A DNA stretch of 64,000 bases from contig NW_027266264.1 of assembly GCF_022045235.1 (NCBI RefSeq), positions 25,172,001 through 25,236,000 on the forward strand, in the 5' to 3' direction. Shown here piece by piece: positions 346 through 21,596 of this stretch. Under the pieces are notes generated by a model that saw only the letters and a program-made list of their open reading frames with translations, ran no database searches and was not told the origin of the DNA. Within the stretch, counting starts at the first letter, position 1; every line of letters starts with the position of its first letter. The position numbers were made by a program, and so were the translations under genes. The stretch comes from Haliotis cracherodii (taxonomy: Eukaryota).

Positions 346-1907
346 GATATCCTCTGCACAATGAGAATCAGACTTACTATGCACTCTGAAAGAAATCTGC
401 CCCGTCAGGAATGGCATGGGGCAAAACTGACGACATTAGGGTATATTGTCCAAAGCCTCTCCCCTTCCCTTTGTATATCTCCTTCAGGTCTCCCCCGCAA
501 GCCCGGGGCAAGCATTCTTGAGACAATATATGCTCGAGGGTTGGGGGCAAGGTGCTACCCTGCTGCGATGAACCAGACACCTGGCCGGGCTTATTTGTCG
601 AAACCACCCAACCGTGTTTAATAAAACCTTCAGTAAGAACCACTGCGTCAGAGAATGGAAACAATAGCTTAAAGAGGAACAGCGGTACAAAAAGTCTTTC
701 CCAATAGTCACATAAAATTGCGTTATAGGACGGCTTAGGGTCACAGCATATTGTTGAGGGTAAGGTACAGATTGTTATACATTAAACGTCAACGCCAAAG
801 AATACTCTCGATTTACCGCCGAAACAGATCGCATTCGGCTGTTCAAAATAGTGATGAACATTATTTAATGGATCACTGAAATGTCACTCTACATTTCAAA
901 CACCTATACCTGTTTAGTTTGATTTACAGCACAGTCAAGAAAAGCATCACTATTGACATATAGTCTCTATTGAAGGTGTGTGTGTTTGGTTGGGAGGGGG
1001 AGGTCGCATATTGTGATTTGGCAATTCAAAAATGTGTAATAGTTTTTGTATATAATATAGTTTTATATAAACCAAATGAGTCTGTTATTGTGTTATTATA
1101 CGTTTAGCATAGCCGATCACCTGTGCAATTTTCAAATGTATAATTCTTCAGTACTATTCTCGAGAAAAGGTATGGAGGATGGGTGGGTCCCGCACATCTA
1201 TCTGGGTCTATGTGTAACACTCAAAGAAGATATCTATTCATGTAATGGTATTCATATATTTATCACATAAATCAAATATTATTTATACTCATAATATAAA
1301 AAAATTGAAACTTGCACTCACTGCTGAAATAAACCAATGAAACTTTTTTTTTATTGTGATAAATATAAATCATTATTTCGACATGAAGTCGACGTGTTGC
1401 TTGGGTAGAGGTGTGTGGGCGATCAGTGCGTGAAGCAATCCATTTACGTATATCACAATCCTGAGATAACACTGCCCACCACGTAGTTTTCCACGTTGAT
1501 ATGAGACGGAGATCAGACAGCATATACAGACACACACATATATACATACCATATGTGTGTGCAATGGTTGGGTCATTACCGTGATATATATAACACATTT
1601 ATCATTGAGGGCTGACGTTTTAATTATTCTTTCATATGTACAATTTATTTTAGTGTGCAATGATGCAGTTATCGCATAATTGCATATATTGTGTATGTAG
1701 TATTATGCATATTGTATATTTTAAACGCCTTGTTATTGTTGACGTTATTCATTGAAAATTCAAAACGTCAATATTATATAAGTTGAAGCCAAATTCAACC
1801 CACCCCCGTAATGTTGCGTGAGAATATATAAGCGCAGTTCACGATCCTCGAGGCATTATCACACAAACCTGTTTACCCCATGCTGATTTCACCGTTAATT
1901 GTTTACT

Positions 1908-2194
1908 GGGGAATCCCCAGCCACGATGCAGACATGATGCTCCTTTCGCAGTATATAATTCAATAAGTTGTCTGGACGATATTTAGTTTTGGACATAACA
2001 GGTTTATTTGACAGTGAGTGAAATTCCACATGAGGCCCCGCGAGTGTCACGTTTACTGCATTTCGCCAGTAGTTTTAGTCAGCCCCGGCGGCTGCTGGAA
2101 TCATTGTTGATATCATGTGACTATGACGCGTATTCAGTCTCGTTTTGAGATTGACCCCTGACATCCCGTCTTGTTTACCGGCCTGTGTATAAAA
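1908..2194 (+). promoter_or_regulatory. Proximal promoter of GNAT copy 1 (kB site, E-box, TATA)
   Basis: GGGGAATCCCC 1908-1918, TCATGTGA 2113-2120, TATAAAA 2188-2194; block alignable with upstream regions of copies 2 and 3. Confidence 0.8.
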
Positions 2195-2217
2195 GAGCAA
2201 GCGATCGTGGCATCGTC

Positions 2218-2351
2218 ATACTTCTCTCTTCACTGCAAGAGAGATTTTGAGCAGCTCTGACAACAAGTCTATCAACGACACAGCGCCCATTTACCTGACA
2301 GCTGTTTTCCAGTATATACTGAGGATTATCAACTGTGTGCGAAACTCATAA
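2218..2351 (+). other. Non-coding first exon of GNAT copy 1; intron 2352-3249
   Basis: Starts about 30 nt after TATA (TSS approximate); donor AA|GTAAGT at 2352; acceptor TTTTTTCAG ending 3249, 9 nt before ATG; same layout in all 3 paralogs. Confidence 0.8.
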
Positions 2352-3258
2352 GTAAGTATATCGACGGTGTTGCATCATTTGGGAATATTGAAATTGCGAT
2401 TTTCAACATGCTTTGACAGTCGGCTCCCTGTGATCTTTGAGCCGAGACGATTTCACCGTTCTCAGTAAATAGGTCAGGTAAATACTCTAGATTGTAAAAC
2501 TAATTATGTTTCGTTATGCATGGCTTTTATACAGGAATGTATGTTGAATGAAAATATGTCCGCCTCGTGTCACTAACTGACTATGATTACAAATAGTAGC
2601 GCTGTAAACCAAACACATCTAAAACAGCACGTGTACACCTTATGTGTTCGGCCACATGTTTATGCGACAGTCACGTTGCCTTTCTCATAATAATACCTCA
2701 GCTTACATGCCTGAAACTACATATTGTCCTCGTAGTCTAATATGTTCTCGCGTTGATATGCTGCGCTGCTCTCGACATGGTGGCAGTTCATACCATGTAT
2801 TTGTCAGCGCTCGATGTAGTTATATATTTTTTTTACGTTCAGGGGTAGACTTACATCTAATCTCTGAAATGAGCATATCGTGCAAAAGAAATATCAGTTG
2901 TTAAATTATCTTTATAAAAATATTATTAAAAGGACTAAAGAGACTCTCTTCATAATGTAGTAATCTAGACTTGCCAAACATTATAGACTTGCATGGGCTG
3001 TATCTGATATATTTGTATCAGGGTCTGTAAGACAGACTAGTTCACGGGTAGAAATCGTTTTAGCGGTTCATTTATCCTTTAGATACGTAAATAATTTATT
3101 AAATGTTAATCTTATTTTGTGTCCGTGATTTGTTATATACTCGTTAACTTATCTTTAAAAATCGAATATTCCATCAAAAATAATGTGCCCTTTTTGTCTT
3201 GAATATCTATTGCATTATATACTAAATTTCCTTTTTAACTTTTTTTCAGGACTCCATC

Positions 3259-3831
3259 ATGCTGATAAATGACAAAGTCGAAAAAGTCAAGCGCCTCCCT
3301 GGCGTTGTCCCTCACACCACCACCCTCCCCGACGGCCGCTTCGTCATTATCGACACCATGAGCGACTCCCAGCTGTCGGAAACCTTCGGCCTCATCCAAG
3401 CCGCGGCCCAGAGCGGCAATGGTTTTGGGGTGGATGAATACACCTCAGAGAAGGAATTCCGTGAAGACATCGACGGCAGCTTCAACTTCGCCGTAATGAG
3501 CAAGGACACTGGAGAGATGGTTGCTGCATTCATGTTGGCCATCAGCAAGTATTACCGTGGCTGCAGCGTTGCCGACCCTTTCATCATTGTAAAGAAGTCA
3601 GAGAGAGGCAAGGGAATCGGCGAGTTTTGTCTCCAGATGTGTGTTGACTTTGCTCAAGATTTGAACTTCATGGGAATGTATGTGGACACTTTCAGCAACA
3701 ACCGTGGCATGATCAAAATCATCGAAAATGTTGGTGGATTCACCCAAGTGGGATGTCTTCCCATGGGCGGCAAGATGAAAGATGGTTCCATTGTCAGTTC
3801 AGTCATCTTCTACAAAGATTTCAATCCATAA
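3259..3831 (+). CDS. GNAT-family N-acetyltransferase, Mpr1/AZC-acetyltransferase-like (copy 1, 190 aa)
   Basis: Acetyl-CoA motif A VKKSERGKGIG, motif B-like FSNNRGMIKIIENVGGF, C-terminal GF.QVG.LP...SSVIFYKDF; three intact copies with full gene architecture. Confidence 0.93.
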   Translation: MLINDKVEKVKRLPGVVPHTTTLPDGRFVIIDTMSDSQLSETFGLIQAAAQSGNGFGVDEYTSEKEFREDIDGSFNFAVMSKDTGEMVAAFMLAISKYYRGCSVADPFIIVKKSERGKGIGEFCLQMCVDFAQDLNFMGMYVDTFSNNRGMIKIIENVGGFTQVGCLPMGGKMKDGSIVSSVIFYKDFNP

Positions 3832-4150
3832 ACTATTGACTTTTCTTCCATGGCTTTATCTCCATTACGTCTCTACGTAGTGTACACGTCATCGCGGCTG
3901 TGATGACGTCACAACAAGGTGTTATCTGCATGAACCACAGGTAACACTCAGAGAGAGCCACTTCCGGTTAGAAGAAGCCCAGTTCCGCTATCGTTCGCTG
4001 TCCAGTGCGAACGGTGGAGCCTGCTCGGTATATAGCTACGCTGGGTCAACCGGATTGCCTTGTAGACTGGTAAACATCGGATTGAATAGAAATGTGCAAT
4101 GAGAAACGTATTGTTCATGCAACAGTATTTGTTAGTCTCGCAGTAGAAAG

Positions 4151-4156
4151 AATAAA
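4151..4156 (+). terminator. Poly(A) signal of GNAT copy 1
   Basis: AATAAA at homologous position in all copies, followed by a T-rich tract. Confidence 0.7.
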
Positions 4157-4498
4157 CATAATATTAGCTAAACGATTTGTTTTGTTCTTTTTTTTATAAA
4201 TAAATACCAATACCCATGATGTCTGTGGCATCGTGAGTACCAACCATTAACACATCATTAGATGCTTTCCAATAAAGGAAACTGTGGCTGACGTCCGTGG
4301 GAATCTTGTCCTTTTCGGTAATGGGAGATTTTCAAAGGCAGAAGGAGACACGGCTGGCAGGGTTGTGCAGGGTTGTTCATGGGTTCGAATCCCGGACAAT
4401 GGTTCCTCACATCCAAAGTATGACATCAATGCTTACTGAAATGTTAGGAGCCTATACCAAGGAGTTGAACACACATTTGAATGTATTACTCTACAATA

Positions 4499-4672
4499 CA
4501 GTAAACTACGTTTATAAAGAACACGCTTATAACGAACTGACGGATATAACGAAATGTTTTTTGGTCCCGTCCATTTGCTGTATATATGTTGTAAATCTGC
4601 TTATTACGATCTACGGTTATAACGAACTAAATTTAGTGGTCCCTTTGAGTTCGTTATAACCTTAGTTTACTG
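4499..4672. mobile_element. MITE (Tc1/mariner-pogo type)
   Basis: 24-bp TIRs CAGTAAACTA.G.TTATAA.GAAC (21/24 match), TA on both flanks; related fragment at about 60185-60248. Confidence 0.8.
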
Positions 4673-4775
4673 TACCCTCCTGCTCACAGGACGCATTTTA
4701 ACCAAATACACACACAAGCAGCATTCATGTATGTCTGCATACATCAAATTGTTAAGGCATCCTCTGTTGATGAAA

Positions 4776-5555
4776 ATGGTCAAAATTGGCTACCACACTG
4801 TCATCAAGTATCTGCAGCTAAAATGGTTAATTCCAACAGCCAGGTATCCGAACATGGAGTCAAATTTAGGGAGTTATGCACCCTCCTTTCAGCACTGTTG
4901 GCAGCGGAGAGGGAGAGAGAGCCCTGAAGATGATCCATGATGCATGATCAGGAAGACTTTGAACTGCAACCACTTAGGAAACTTGATAAAATACATAAAA
5001 TTGATTATGAATGATGATACCATTACTCATGAAAGCGTTGAGAATATTCTGGACTGGACTGGACATGACAAAGGCTTCGGCACGCAGAGTTCCAAGTCTT
5101 CGGACTCCTGATCAGAAACGCTTTAGGTGCCTCATCTCTCGTGAGAGATTACTGCGTTGTGAGTGAGTGAGTTGGGTTCATTACACAGTATTCCAGTTAT
5201 ATCACGGCGTGTCAGCTTGATGTAGGTGGCAAGCCCGAAGTGATGCAGGTCTTTGCTGAAACCCATGAACACGGGTATCGTGCTGATCAACCTAGAAGCA
5301 TAATCGGGTCGAACCGGGATTCGAACACACGATGACACGTTTATGGTGTGCCCAAGGGGCACAGCTCTACACAGTGAATTGTACGCCGCTGTGAAGCAGA
5401 CCCAGCTCATTTTGTAACCATCGAGGAGTCTTTGGGTCACAAGTATCAGTCAGAGATTAAACAACAGGCAAAGCAGTGGAAACATCCAAAGTCTCATTGG
5501 AAAGAAAAGCAAAATCTGTTCCATCTGGCAAGGTGATGGTATCGGCTTTTAAGAA
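4776..5555 (+). mobile_element. Degenerate mariner transposase fragment, split by a SINE
   Basis: Translates to MVKIGYHTVIKYLQLK..APSF, GRESPEDDP, VPSLRTPDQK, FVTIEE, EIKQQAKQWKH (mariner-type motifs) with frameshifts and stops. Confidence 0.8.
5160..5390 (-). mobile_element. SINE family B, degenerate
   Basis: Matches copies at 7890/22992/24675; (GAGT)n tail. Confidence 0.8.
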
Positions 5556-5650
5556 CTCCATACTCAAAAGTAATCTCTGTTAAAAACAGAGTTCATTGTA
5601 CGATTCCAGTTATATCATAAGCATGTGTCTGGATTTTACAACTTTTGTAT

Positions 5651-5775
5651 GAGTGAGTGAGTATGGTTTTAGGCCGCTTTTAGCAATATTCAAGCAATAT
5701 CACGACGGGGGACACCCGAAAAGGGCTTCACACATTGTACCCATGTCGGGAATCGAACCCGGGTCTTTGACGTGA
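5651..5775 (-). mobile_element. SINE family A, 5'-truncated
   Basis: B-box GGTTCGATTCC and family-A body and tail on minus strand. Confidence 0.85.
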
Positions 5776-6639
5776 ACTTTCTACTAAGATTTCAAAGGGC
5801 ATCATACGACTCTTGCTCAGGAGTTGTTTTATCAAGGTTATAATAACATATAAGGCCTCAGAAAAGTTTTTATGAAACGTTTTATGGTAGACAGGTGGAA
5901 GACATTTCCAAATTATACGCATTAGTGAGAAACTGATCTCCGTGTGACAAATTGCTCCCGTGGTTTTAGGTGAATAGTTGACTTGCCTTTGCATGTGTTT
6001 CTGACAGGTGCAACAAAAGGGGGGGAAGGGGGCGGGGGGCAGGATAGGCTCACCTTTTCGCGAACGCCTAGTATCATCACTATTAAATGGTTATTCATAA
6101 ATACTTGCTCATGATATAGTCGGAATCGTACAATCGGCTCTTTATTGTCAGAGATTTCTTAGAAATATGGAACGGATTATGTGCCTTTATCCACTTTGTC
6201 AGTTGCGGTTACGACCTTAGCGTGCAGGACATAGATATTTAGCAATGTTTCAGGTTAGTTTTGTTAGACCTGGTCCACCTCTTAGACCTCTTAGCACCAT
6301 ATTCTCTCTACTGCACACAGCGCGTTCCACAGTTCTGGCAGGAACTCAGTCCACCAATGCTTTCTACTATCCGTCGTTTATTAGGTTTACTAGCATTTAG
6401 TAAATAAGACTTACTCGCTGGTTTTTCTTTTTCGTCTTCTGTTGAATAAGATCTGTTAACCCAACTGAAGCTATATCAATCTGTTCCGCTTGGGAGTTTG
6501 CCCAGAAAATCACTGTTTGACGTCATATATTTTGTATATCGCACAGTATCGTCGGCGGAAGCACGAGATCGTCCTTTTTTTAACTTTGTCGATACTACAT
6601 GTCCACTTCAACATAGCATGATCTAGTTTGGTTTCCATA

Positions 6640-6906
6640 TGTTTGTTTTGTTTGTTTGTTTGTTGTTTTACGCCGCACCTAGCAATATTCCCGCTATATG
6701 ACGGCTGTCTGTAAATATTCGAGTCTGGACCAGTCATCACGAGCATCGATCCACACAATCGGGCTACGATGACATGCATCAACCAAGTCAGCGAGCCTGA
6801 CCACCCGATCCCGTTAGTCGCCTCTTACGACAAGCATAGTCGCCTTTTACGGCAAGTATGGGTTGCTGAAGACCTACATGTATTCTAGACCAGATCTTCA
6901 CGGGTC
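6640..6906 (-). mobile_element. Retroposon family C (no tRNA head)
   Basis: 5' GACCCGTGAAGATC, GTCGTAAGAGGCGACTAA core, (AAAC)n tail, TSD TGGTTTCCATA 6629-6639/6907-6917. Confidence 0.9.
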
Positions 6907-7324
6907 TGGTTTCCATACGACCCACGACTATGTCAACAATATATATATGTCCTTTTTCTAGCATTATGTTTGTATCAGTGACTTAAAATTGACTAAACTT
7001 AACATGATTTGTTGGGGACTATACCATGTTCAACCACTGACTGGCCTTATGTGGAAACACATGTAAAATCATCCGACGACAATATGCATGACAAGAAAGA
7101 ATTCTCGCCTTCGACGTAGTTTGTCAACTCACATCTACTTTTAAATACACCACATGTATACAATAGTTCTCCACAAGTCTGATATTCTCGTATGTGTAAC
7201 AGTAACGTATCAAACTTTGATTAGGTAAGGTAAAACCAAACCCATTCCACACCAGTTCTCTGCCCTCGTGGTTAAATTACTCAATCGTGTTTACCACATG
7301 CTTATTGCCGCGTTAATCGTTTCC

Positions 7325-7610
7325 GGGGAAATCCCCAGCCGCTCAACACAAACAAGATAATTTTGTCCAAGTCAATGTTTTCGATAATTTGTCTGAACAA
7401 TATTTAGTTTGGCAAATAACAGGTTTATTTGACAATGTGTCAAATCCTGCATGACGCCCTGTGATTGACATGTTTACCACATTTCGTCATATGTAGAGGC
7501 CAGGCGGCTGCGGGAAATATTGTTGATATCACATGACAAAGACAGGCATCCAATCTCGCTCAGAGATTTGGCCTGACATTCCGTCCCATTCTGCCGTCAG
7601 GTGTATAAAA
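7325..7610 (+). promoter_or_regulatory. Proximal promoter of GNAT copy 2
   Basis: GGGGAAATCCCC 7325-7336, TCACATGA 7529-7536, TATAAAA 7604-7610. Confidence 0.8.
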
Positions 7611-7633
7611 GAGCAAGTGATCAAGGCTACCAT

Positions 7634-7761
7634 CACACTTCTCTCATGACTGCAAGTCAGATTTCCAGCAGCTCTGACAAGTTTTGCTACCAACGGCACC
7701 GTCTCCATTTACCTGACAGGTGTTTACCAGTACATACCTTGGTTTATAAACCGACTGCAAA
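7634..7761 (+). other. Non-coding first exon of GNAT copy 2; intron 7762-8442
   Basis: Homologous to copy 1 exon; donor AA|GTGAGT at 7762; acceptor CTCTTTTTTCAG ending 8442. Confidence 0.78.
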
Positions 7762-7889
7762 GTGAGTATATCTATCCTTGTTGCAATACTCGCGAATATC
7801 GAAATTTGAAATGTGGAGGAATCTACCTAAAATGTTTTATGTGACTTACTTCGTAATATCTAATTATTTTATATGTCTATAGTGGAACA

Positions 7890-8170
7890 GGGGGCACGGG
7901 TGGCCCAGTCGTCCAAGGCGCCGCAATTCGCTGTGCAGAGTTGCGTCCCTTGGGCACGCCAGAAACCTATGATTGTGGGTTCGAATCCCGGTTCGCTCCG
8001 ATTATGTTTCTATGTTTGTAAGCACCATACCCGTGCTCGTGGGTTTCACCGAAGTGGTAAACGTCTGAGATCACTTCGGGCTTTCCTCCCATATTTTACA
8101 TTTTCCTCCCGTGATATAACTGGAATACTGTTATAAGCGGCGTTAAACCCAACTCACTCACTCACTCACA
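7890..8170 (+). mobile_element. SINE family B (tRNA-Leu/Ser-like head) in the intron of GNAT copy 2
   Basis: A-box GTGGCCCAGTCG, B-box GGTTCGAATCC, (ACTC)n tail, TSD-like TA.TGGAACA. Confidence 0.9.
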
Positions 8171-8451: not shown

Positions 8452-9027
8452 ATGCTGATAAATGACAAAGTAGAAAAAGCCAAGTGCCTCCCTGGCGTTG
8501 TCCCTCACACCACCACCCTCCCCGACGGCCGCTTCGTCATCATCGACATCATGAGCGACTCCCAGCTGTCGGAAACCTTCGGCCTCATCCAAGCTGCGGC
8601 CCAGAGCGGCAATGGTTTTGGGGTGGATGAATACTCCTCAGAGAAGGAATTCCGCAAAGACATCGACGGCAGCTTCAACTTCGCCATAATGATCAAGGAA
8701 AGTGGAGAGATGGTTGCTGCATTTATGTTGGCCATCAGCAAGTATTACCGTGGCTGCAACAGCGTTGCCGACCCTTTCGTCATTGTAAAGAAGTCAGAGA
8801 GAGGCAAGGGAATCGGCGAGTTTTGTCTCCAGATGTGTGTTGACTTTGCTCAAGATTTGAACTTCATGGGAATGTATGTGGACACTTTCAGCAACAACCG
8901 TGGCATGATCAAAATCATCGAAAATGTTGGCGGATTCACCCAAGTGGGATTTCTTCCCATGGGCGGCAAGATGAAAGATGGTACCATTGTTAGTTCAGTC
9001 ATCTTCTACAAAGATTTCCATTCATAA
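8452..9027 (+). CDS. GNAT-family N-acetyltransferase (copy 2, 191 aa)
   Basis: Paralog of 3259-3831 with 14 substitutions plus one inserted Asn; motif A intact. Confidence 0.93.
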   Translation: MLINDKVEKAKCLPGVVPHTTTLPDGRFVIIDIMSDSQLSETFGLIQAAAQSGNGFGVDEYSSEKEFRKDIDGSFNFAIMIKESGEMVAAFMLAISKYYRGCNSVADPFVIVKKSERGKGIGEFCLQMCVDFAQDLNFMGMYVDTFSNNRGMIKIIENVGGFTQVGFLPMGGKMKDGTIVSSVIFYKDFHS

Positions 9028-15024: not shown

Positions 15025-15708
15025 AGCCGCATCATACAGCCGGGGGCAACGGTACCTTGAACAGATGCTCGAGGGATGGGGCAAGTTGCTGTCCTGCTGC
15101 GGTGACCCCGGAGCGTGGTCGGGCTATATGAGTCTACCCAGTCGTGCGTCACAAATCTTTACATAGAACAACTGCGTCAGAGAATGCAAGCAAAAGATGA
15201 ACGAGGAATAGTGATGACAGATTCTTGCCCAATAATTATATAAATTGCGTTATAGGACGGCTCGGGGTCACAGCATATATTTCAGATATGTTGACGGTTA
15301 GGTCCACTTTGTCATATCTAATGTCACAACATTTCACACGCCTACGCTTTTTTGTTTGTTTTACAGTTCAGTCACGATAACCATCAACAGTTTCATAAAA
15401 GGATTCTGTTCAGAACAGTTATATAAATAAAACATGTACCAGGTGTTCCTATACTTGTTACGAATGAATAATATATGTATATATTATATAAGTACTTGCA
15501 AGTCAAGTATACAGTCCATTATTTTTTAAATTTAAAACACAACACAACATTAGAGAACTTATTCGGAGGTGTGTTGTGTTTTAAATTTACAATGTTTACT
15601 ATCATCTGTAAAATTTCCACTAGGTTAACCGACCTCCCCCGTTCGCATAAAAGAGCACGCGATGAAGGGTATCGTCACGCTTCTATCTTCCCTGCAAGAG
15701 ATATTTGG
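15025..15708 (+). pseudogene. Relic fourth GNAT unit (upstream block, core promoter and start of exon 1 only)
   Basis: 15025-15400 aligns to 495-965; 15646-15708 CATAAAAGAGCACGCGAT..CCTGCAAGAGATATTTG aligns to copy 1 TATAAAAGAGCAAGCGAT..ACTGCAAGAGAGATTTTG; no CDS follows. Confidence 0.7.
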
Positions 15709-21291: not shown

Positions 21292-21314
21292 GCGAAACCC
21301 TGGATCGCTTGCTC

Positions 21315-21596
21315 TTTTATACACAGGCCGGTAAACAGGACGGGATGTCAGGGGTCAATCTCAGAACGAGACTGAATGCGCGACATAGTCACGTGATATC
21401 AACACTTATTTCCCACAGCTGTCTGGGCTGACTTCTGCAACTGACGAAATGCAGTAAACATGTTTCTCACGGGAGCTCGTGCGGACATTGTCAAATAAGC
21501 CTGTTATTTGCACAACTAAGTATCGTTCAGGCAAAATATCGAACAATTTAGCCTGAAAAGATCAGCTTGTTTATGCTTAGTGGCTGGGGATTCCCC
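21315..21596 (-). promoter_or_regulatory. Proximal promoter of GNAT copy 3
   Basis: TATAAAA 21315-21321 (minus), TCACGTGA 21389-21396, GGGGATTCCCC 21586-21596. Confidence 0.8.

Follow-up and report, generated by a model that had tools for sequence, protein, structure and literature searches.

Host-defence genes of C. elegans and Drosophila are controlled by TFEB/HLH-30 (CLEAR/M-box) and FOXO. Induction of the gene SAT1/SSAT, on its side, involves response elements for NF-kB and Nrf2. NF-kB control of mammalian SAT1/SSAT, a small GNAT, was reportedly proposed by Babbar, Gerner and Casero in 2006. We analysed a window of 64 kb (C1:25172001-25236000) from a 1.18-Gb Haliotis genome, which carries three tandem GNAT acetyltransferase paralogs of 190-191 aa, called A, B and C. 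A preliminary description had put forward the hypothesis that their promoters hold a positionally conserved three-factor module (Rel/NF-kB, MITF/TFE and Fox) responding to immune challenge or starvation. The reading that we tentatively favour, at just short of an even chance, is a genuine shared promoter whose kB palindrome would be a functional RHD site, the E-box and the forkhead-like sites being possible auxiliaries.

The three acetyltransferase genes

A common layout is found in A, B and C: a TATA box, an Inr-like element, a non-coding exon 1 spanning roughly 130-160 nt, an intron whose length is 898 bp in A, ~680 bp in B and ~1.9 kb in C, and a single exon containing the whole CDS and the 3'UTR (Table 1). 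The three proteins match PF00583 with 27.7-28.2 bits, the cut-off being 20.7. Their best protein matches outside come from H. rubra (95%), followed by H. asinina (91%); for a neighbouring paralog, the identity to a protein of H. rufescens reaches 98%. Homologues are present across molluscs, gastropods and bivalves both carrying the GNAT family. The AlphaFold model of the protein is compact, with a pLDDT of 88.6, and the nearest structures retrieved by Foldseek are 1vhs (a putative phosphinothricin acetyltransferase), PA4866 and SpeG, with E-values around 1e-10 and a TM of 0.75-0.85 to 1vhs. Weak profile matches were obtained with PAT, Mpr1 and the tabtoxin-resistance protein (Ttr), with E between 1e-4 and 1e-3, and the matches to diamine acetyltransferases are weak as well (E=0.014). 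An assignment as "Mpr1-like" was dropped because it relied on the weak profile match only (E=1e-4), no match being obtained with a single sequence. Altogether, the fold neighbours and the mollusc-wide family fit A, B and C products that are predicted small-molecule acetyltransferases.

No mention of the orthologue gene IDs was found in the literature, and a search on abalone, GNAT and NF-kB returned nothing specific to the A/B/C genes. A "Gnat-family acetyltransferase" EST, a candidate relative only, is 3.7-fold up in the haemocytes of schistosome-exposed resistant Biomphalaria (PMC2631019, Table 2).

Three other paralogs were identified outside the window. Paralog D, located 35 kb beyond it, has 56% amino acid identity, and two paralogs on C2 have 35% and 33%. 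All of them keep the acceptor-before-ATG structure, and neither promoter homology nor a kB site was found in the ~8 kb upstream of D and of the two C2 paralogs. Lacking promoter homology, these genes add no power to the conservation test described below.

Several other elements were noticed in the window. At positions 15647-15706, a stretch of about 60 bp that is 82% identical to positions 2189-2247 of gene A represents a fourth TATA/start-site block (GCATAAAAGAGCACGCGATG...CTGCAAGAGATATTTGG). This relic, which comes with no upstream promoter, exon or CDS, is apparently a duplicate that was truncated. Positions 2780-3180, 4380-4780, 5180-5380, 5580-5780, 6580-6980 and 7880-8165 are occupied by interspersed repeats, whose contig depths range from 1e4 to 5e6 in every run. 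Among the repeats of the A-B spacer and of introns A and B are tRNA-derived SINE-like elements (GGTTCGAATCCCGG box).

Table 1. Features of genes A, B and C in the 64-kb window
Feature	Position	Strand	Description
Gene A upstream promoter	1835-2187	+	homologous in all three copies; three-way alignment; blastn boundaries 1835/7253/21669
Gene A Fox-like F1, TGTTTAC	1870-1876	+	TGTTTAC in B, TATTTAC in C, same column
Gene A Fox-like F2, TTGTTTAC	1900-1906	+	abuts the kB site; CGTTTCC in B, CGTTTAC in C; not conserved as Fox
Gene A kB-type palindrome, GGGGAATCCCC	1908-1918	+	within block TTAAT.GTTT.C.GGGG.AATCCCCAGCC (1897-1922)
Gene A Fox-like F3	2050-2056	+	CGTTTAC in A, TGTTTAC in B and C
Gene A E-box, TCATGTGA	2113-2120	+	in conserved block TGTTGATATCAYRTGAC (2105-2121)
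Gene A Fox-like F4, TTGTTTACC	2172-2178	+	present in C, lost in B (CCATTCTGCC)
Gene A TATA box, TATAAAAG	2188-2195	+	within the longest invariant run, GTGTATAAAAGAGCAAG (2185-2201)
Gene A exon 1 (5'UTR)	2190-2351	+	X1 RNA-like contig record 1; donor GTAAGT at 2352
Gene A exon 2 (CDS + 3'UTR)	3250-4163	+	X8 RNA-like contig record 27
Gene A CDS	3259-3831	+	190 aa, GNAT; ORF + Pfam
Gene B upstream promoter	7253-7603	+	three-way alignment; blastn
Gene B kB-type site, GGGGAAATCCCC	7325-7336	+	one extra central A; GGGAAATCCC still contained
Gene B E-box, TCACATGA	7529-7536	+	TCAYRTGA match
Gene B TATA box, TATAAAAG	7604-7611	+	sequence match
Gene B CDS	8452-9027	+	exon 1 end ~7761
Gene C kB-type site, GGGGATTCCCC	21586-21596	-	gene-strand reading GGGGGAATCCCC
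Gene C E-box, TCACGTGA	21389-21396	-	likely ancestral CpG form
Gene C TATA box, TATAAAAG	21314-21321	-	sequence match
Gene C CDS	19214-18642	-	ORF + Pfam

Core promoter and transcription

The positions of all kB, E-box and TATA motifs given in the preliminary description were confirmed by a sequence check of A, B and C. The GTGTATAAAAGAGCAAG block is invariant in the three genes, and a YYANWYY Inr-like element is found 30 bp downstream of each TATA box (TCATACT at 2216-2222 in gene A). The 350 bp that precede each of A, B and C most likely make up a genuine TATA/Inr-type RNA polymerase II promoter descending from one ancestral gene.

Three small contig sets with three organism labels, X1, X4 and X8, were taken as RNA-like, and X15 is a DNA run of organism H. 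In gene A, exon 1, the CDS and the 3'UTR are all covered by X1, X4 and X8 contigs, which are absent from the unique intergenic bins where X15 has a depth of ~10-15x. A spliced joint 2347->3250 is present in the X4 and X8 contigs. Gene A is thus transcribed and spliced as read from its sequence. For gene B, RNA-like depth was recovered over exon 1 in the bin 7580-7779 (X1 and X4) and none in 6980-7579. Consistent with a promoter located there, the X1 and X4 RNA-like contigs contain nothing upstream of position 2180 (bin 1980-2179). The first base of the X1 contig, 2190, falls within the TATA box, and contigs cannot prove a start. Besides, X8 (organism E) contains a contig of 417 nt covering positions 1937-2347 at about 1/6 of the mRNA depth and running through the E-box and two Fox-like sites, which means that the promoter region is partly transcribed in this organism. 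The contig's start at 1937, 19 nt downstream of the kB palindrome, may correspond to an alternative upstream start or to enhancer-associated transcription.

The mRNA was recovered in RNA-like contig sets from 14 runs, representing 7 organism labels and 10 studies, with no selection for challenge. This is a point in favour of a different use of the promoter, which we consider rather unlikely: the sites would be functional, but for the constitutive or tissue-specific expression (e.g. in the digestive gland) of a small-molecule detoxifying enzyme, and would be read by other factors. The nature of the protein goes in the same direction, its nearest relatives (phosphinothricin/methionine-sulfoximine N-acetyltransferases, SpeG, Mpr1 and the tabtoxin-resistance protein) being detoxification or polyamine enzymes.

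Conserved blocks of the three promoters

The promoters were compared in a three-way alignment comprising exon 1 and the ~355 bp that precede the TATA box, its three sequences being non-independent paralogs. The pairwise promoter identity is 69-73% when gaps are counted (73-75% by BLAST). The promoter is present in 3 copies in the 1.18 Gb, and a repeat or transposable-element origin was rejected on the basis of this copy number.

Between A and C, the CDS are 99.0% identical at the DNA level, with 5 synonymous differences and 1 non-synonymous one, for an identity of 86% in the 3'UTR and ~73% in the promoter. A patch of ~90 bp (2112-2200 in A, 21397-21311 in C) is 90-100% identical. This near identity of the CDS and of a proximal patch, in the midst of diverged introns, promoters and 3'UTRs, is indicative of gene conversion, with tracts that have the CDS and the core promoter at their centre, and some of the conservation is therefore inflated. 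The protein tree gave no duplication date, since the A/B/C clade was not resolved, probably through conversion.

Invariant columns make up 60% of the alignment, with the same fraction in the promoter and in the 5'UTR exon (0.60 each). This equality, together with the homogenised CDS and promoter patch, suggests that the motifs could be a non-functional residue of descent, the copies having diverged too little to lose them and patchy gene conversion having helped to retain them. The alignable part of the A-C intron, 70.7% identical compared with 74% for the promoter, points the same way. We consider this residual origin of the motifs unlikely. Against it stands the clustering of the invariant columns, which is significant, with five runs of at least 10 columns against 1.2 expected (P=0.0014) and nine runs of at least 8 against 3.4 (P=0.0008). 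The longest of them are the TATA block (17), a 5'UTR block (15), TGTTGATATCA at the E-box (11) and AATCCCCAGCC of the kB site (11), and the three-way identity profile peaks at 1891-1920 (kB), 1978-2007 and 2172-2200. The conserved blocks moreover coincide with high-information consensus sites. The promoter is still alignable in all pairs, whereas most of the A-B intron no longer is (only ~11% of intron A aligns to B, and ~62% to C). Lastly, among the differences listed for organism H (~5% noncoding divergence), 1 falls in the 155 bp of positions 2035-2189 and 24 in the 544 bp of exon 1 and intron. These listed differences are suggestive of a proximal promoter more conserved than the UTR and intron, which also argues against a mere residue of descent.

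To evaluate the motifs, 50 textbook consensus patterns were searched for three-way positional matches and compared with 1000 column-shuffled alignments. The top ranks were obtained, ahead of weaker patterns, by kB (0/1000 shuffles), TCAYRTGA (P=0.003), TRTTTAC at 1870 (P=0.012) and TATA (P=0.023). The choice of kB, TCAYRTGA and TRTTTAC in the preliminary description was thus not arbitrary. No three-way match to WGATAR, the GATA motif, was found in the A/B/C promoters.

Some conserved blocks are explained by none of Rel, MITF/TFE and Fox: ATAACAGGTTTATTTGACA at 1995-2013 and CCATTTACCTGACAG at 2287-2301 in the 5'UTR. The same applies to a DR1-like block, TGACCCCTGACAT, found at 2152-2164 in A and C only.

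The end of the kB site is separated from the TATA box by 270, 268 and 265 bp in A, B and C, respectively, which reproduces the reported spacing of 265-270 bp. Each copy matches GGGRNNYYCC in 2-4 overlapping registers. Over the window this pattern has 15 matches for 5.6 expected, a number reached in 3 of 100 shuffles; the three promoter occurrences are homologous and hence not independent events. Within the kB block (1897-1922), 4 of the 26 columns are variable and AATCCCCAGCC forms an 11-column invariant run. The block ranks among the top ~10% of alignment blocks, 11.6% of the 11-mers having at most 1 variable column. From the base composition, one would expect a perfect kB palindrome of 11 bp ~0.01 times in a window of 64 kb, so that its occurrence by chance is improbable, a further argument against non-functional leftovers. 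Of the three motif classes, and judging from these three paralogs, only the kB block appears conserved clearly above the promoter-wide background. The palindrome is the reverse complement of GGGGATTCCCC, the kB site of the mammalian MHC class I gene H-2Kb.

A transposable-element or repeat origin was rejected for the kB block too, the four other genomic occurrences of GGGGATTCCCCAGCC having unrelated flanks. A metagenome scan with the kB-block pattern yielded one unrelated contig, which shares the 25-bp kB block only and corresponds to a chance match. At an unrelated locus (C3:4955943), another GGGGATTCCCCAGCC directly follows a full CRE (TGACGTCAC) and may constitute a composite CRE-kB element.

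For the E-box, TCAYRTGA has 15 matches in the window for 8.6 expected, and 4 of 100 shuffles contain as many; here too, the three promoter matches are homologous. Its 5' flank TGTTGATATCA is an 11-column invariant run. Its core is of average conservation, with 2 variable columns out of 8, a level reached by 43% of all 8-mers. The centre reads CG in C, TG in A and CA in B, i.e. a CpG and its two deamination products. It had been pointed out that the three variants all fit TCAYRTGA; they do, but neutral CpG decay of an ancestral CACGTG predicts exactly these three. A metagenome scan with the E-box-to-TATA pattern gave no match.

TGTTTAC-type sites number 2-3 per 355-bp promoter, all on the sense strand, compared with 0.5 per kb in the window, which represents a density 10-17 times the background. 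Several such sites per copy had been announced, and this holds as a count, F1 being the only one strictly kept in all three copies; F3 is strictly kept in two of the three and, in organism H (X15), carries a C>A change at 2056 and reads GTTTAA. Positional conservation in these three copies appears to exceed the background for the kB block, but not for the E-box core, which is average, nor for F2 and F4, which are not kept in all three. The average level at which the E-box core, F1 and F3 are conserved would suit motifs merely inherited, as would the nature of the variants, which belong to the commonest mutation types (CpG transitions and homopolymer/A-run slippage).

Away from the window, a 1-kb locus-specific minisatellite (C2:~13578830-13579845), with a period of 32/64 and GTAAACA(A)/GTAAATG units, contains ~30 perfect matches to the forkhead core and, lying upstream of the 35% GNAT paralog, stops ~150 bp short of its coding exon. 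No further copy of it was found elsewhere in the genome.

Regulators and known systems

Two Rel-homology genes were identified in the genome, with PF00554 exons over the cut-off at loci on C45 and C12, and one MITF/TFE gene, with PF15951 over the cut-off on C56. A search of the genome for the FOXO_KIX domain gave no match, and neither did the controls. Under the reading that we favour, the A/B/C promoter would be one ancestral promoter carrying a handful of constrained blocks. The strongest block outside the core promoter would be the kB palindrome, ~270 bp upstream of the TATA box, most likely bound by one of the two Rel-homology proteins. With the palindrome as a likely RHD site, A, B and C are probably Rel/NF-kB-responsive. 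The E-box, with TCACGTGA as its ancestral form, and the same-strand TRTTTAC(C) repeats would be plausible auxiliary sites, their conservation not exceeding the background.

Forkhead, E-box and kB-like motif classes are each common to many factor families. Were the promoter instead devoted to constitutive or tissue-specific expression, FoxA-type factors could read TRTTTACC, USF, Myc/Max or other bHLH proteins the E-box, and HIVEP/Schnurri-type zinc fingers or NFAT the kB-like site. The ATAACAGGTTTATTTGACA and TGACCCCTGACAT blocks, outside the scope of the three named factors, would also be in line with such a programme. However, a perfect 11-bp classical high-affinity kB palindrome suits RHD dimers better than these alternatives, and the E-boxes of A (CATGTG) and B (CACATG) depart from CACGTG, for which USF and Myc have a preference, while staying compatible with MITF/TFE.

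The preliminary description had interpreted the locus as an "effector arm of innate immunity", a hypothesis drawn from motif names only. The three-factor module itself is partly supported, by a real promoter, transcribed paralogs, the ranks of the motifs in the 50-pattern test and the presence of RHD and MITF/TFE genes; the distant paralogs, which have no kB site, weaken it. Binding of the factors, like any link of A, B and C with infection or starvation, is something we infer. In its most extended form, the proposal would be that this abalone three-gene subfamily, under the joint control of Rel/NF-kB, a TFE-type bHLH-Zip protein and a forkhead factor, constitutes an inducible arm of chemical defence or detoxification whose enzymes, in times of infection or starvation, acetylate a toxin from microbes or algae, a polyamine or an amino-acid analogue; we regard this proposal as quite improbable. 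If the kB palindrome is functional, A, B and C would join the small number of mollusc genes for which a Rel-responsive promoter is defined. Innate-immune signalling would then be linked to a small-molecule acetyltransferase, which would be useful for abalone disease work and for finding the detoxified compound.

Compared with the H-2Kb kB element, the abalone core is identical over 11 bp on the opposite strand, and a TATA promoter follows a few hundred bp downstream of it. As for the Rel-dependent immune promoters of insects and molluscs, the abalone host likewise encodes RHD proteins (n=2). Insect immune promoters typically contain a GATA partner motif, whereas the abalone A/B/C promoters have no three-way WGATAR, and their kB site is restricted to the A/B/C subfamily. 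The resemblance to SAT1/SSAT lies in a small GNAT under putative NF-kB control; the abalone protein, with PAT/PA4866 as its nearest fold, is no orthologue of SSAT. With the TFEB/HLH-30 and FOXO systems, the abalone locus shares the motif classes TCAYRTGA and TGTTTAC, and the genome a MITF/TFE gene. The full CLEAR consensus is approached by copy C only (TCACGTGAC), and the E-box core is not conserved above background. The detoxifying GNATs 1vhs, PA4866, ArsN1, Mpr1 and the tabtoxin-resistance protein have the same fold as the abalone protein, with an identity of only 12-20%; for ArsN1, the abalone protein scores 37.7 bits, below the NCBIfam cut-off of 170. Of these enzymes, 1vhs and PA4866 are bacterial phosphinothricin/MSO acetyltransferases and Mpr1 comes from yeast, whereas the abalone family is mollusc-wide. 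The regulation predicted for A, B and C is reasonable and belongs to a familiar type rather than to a new kind of system.
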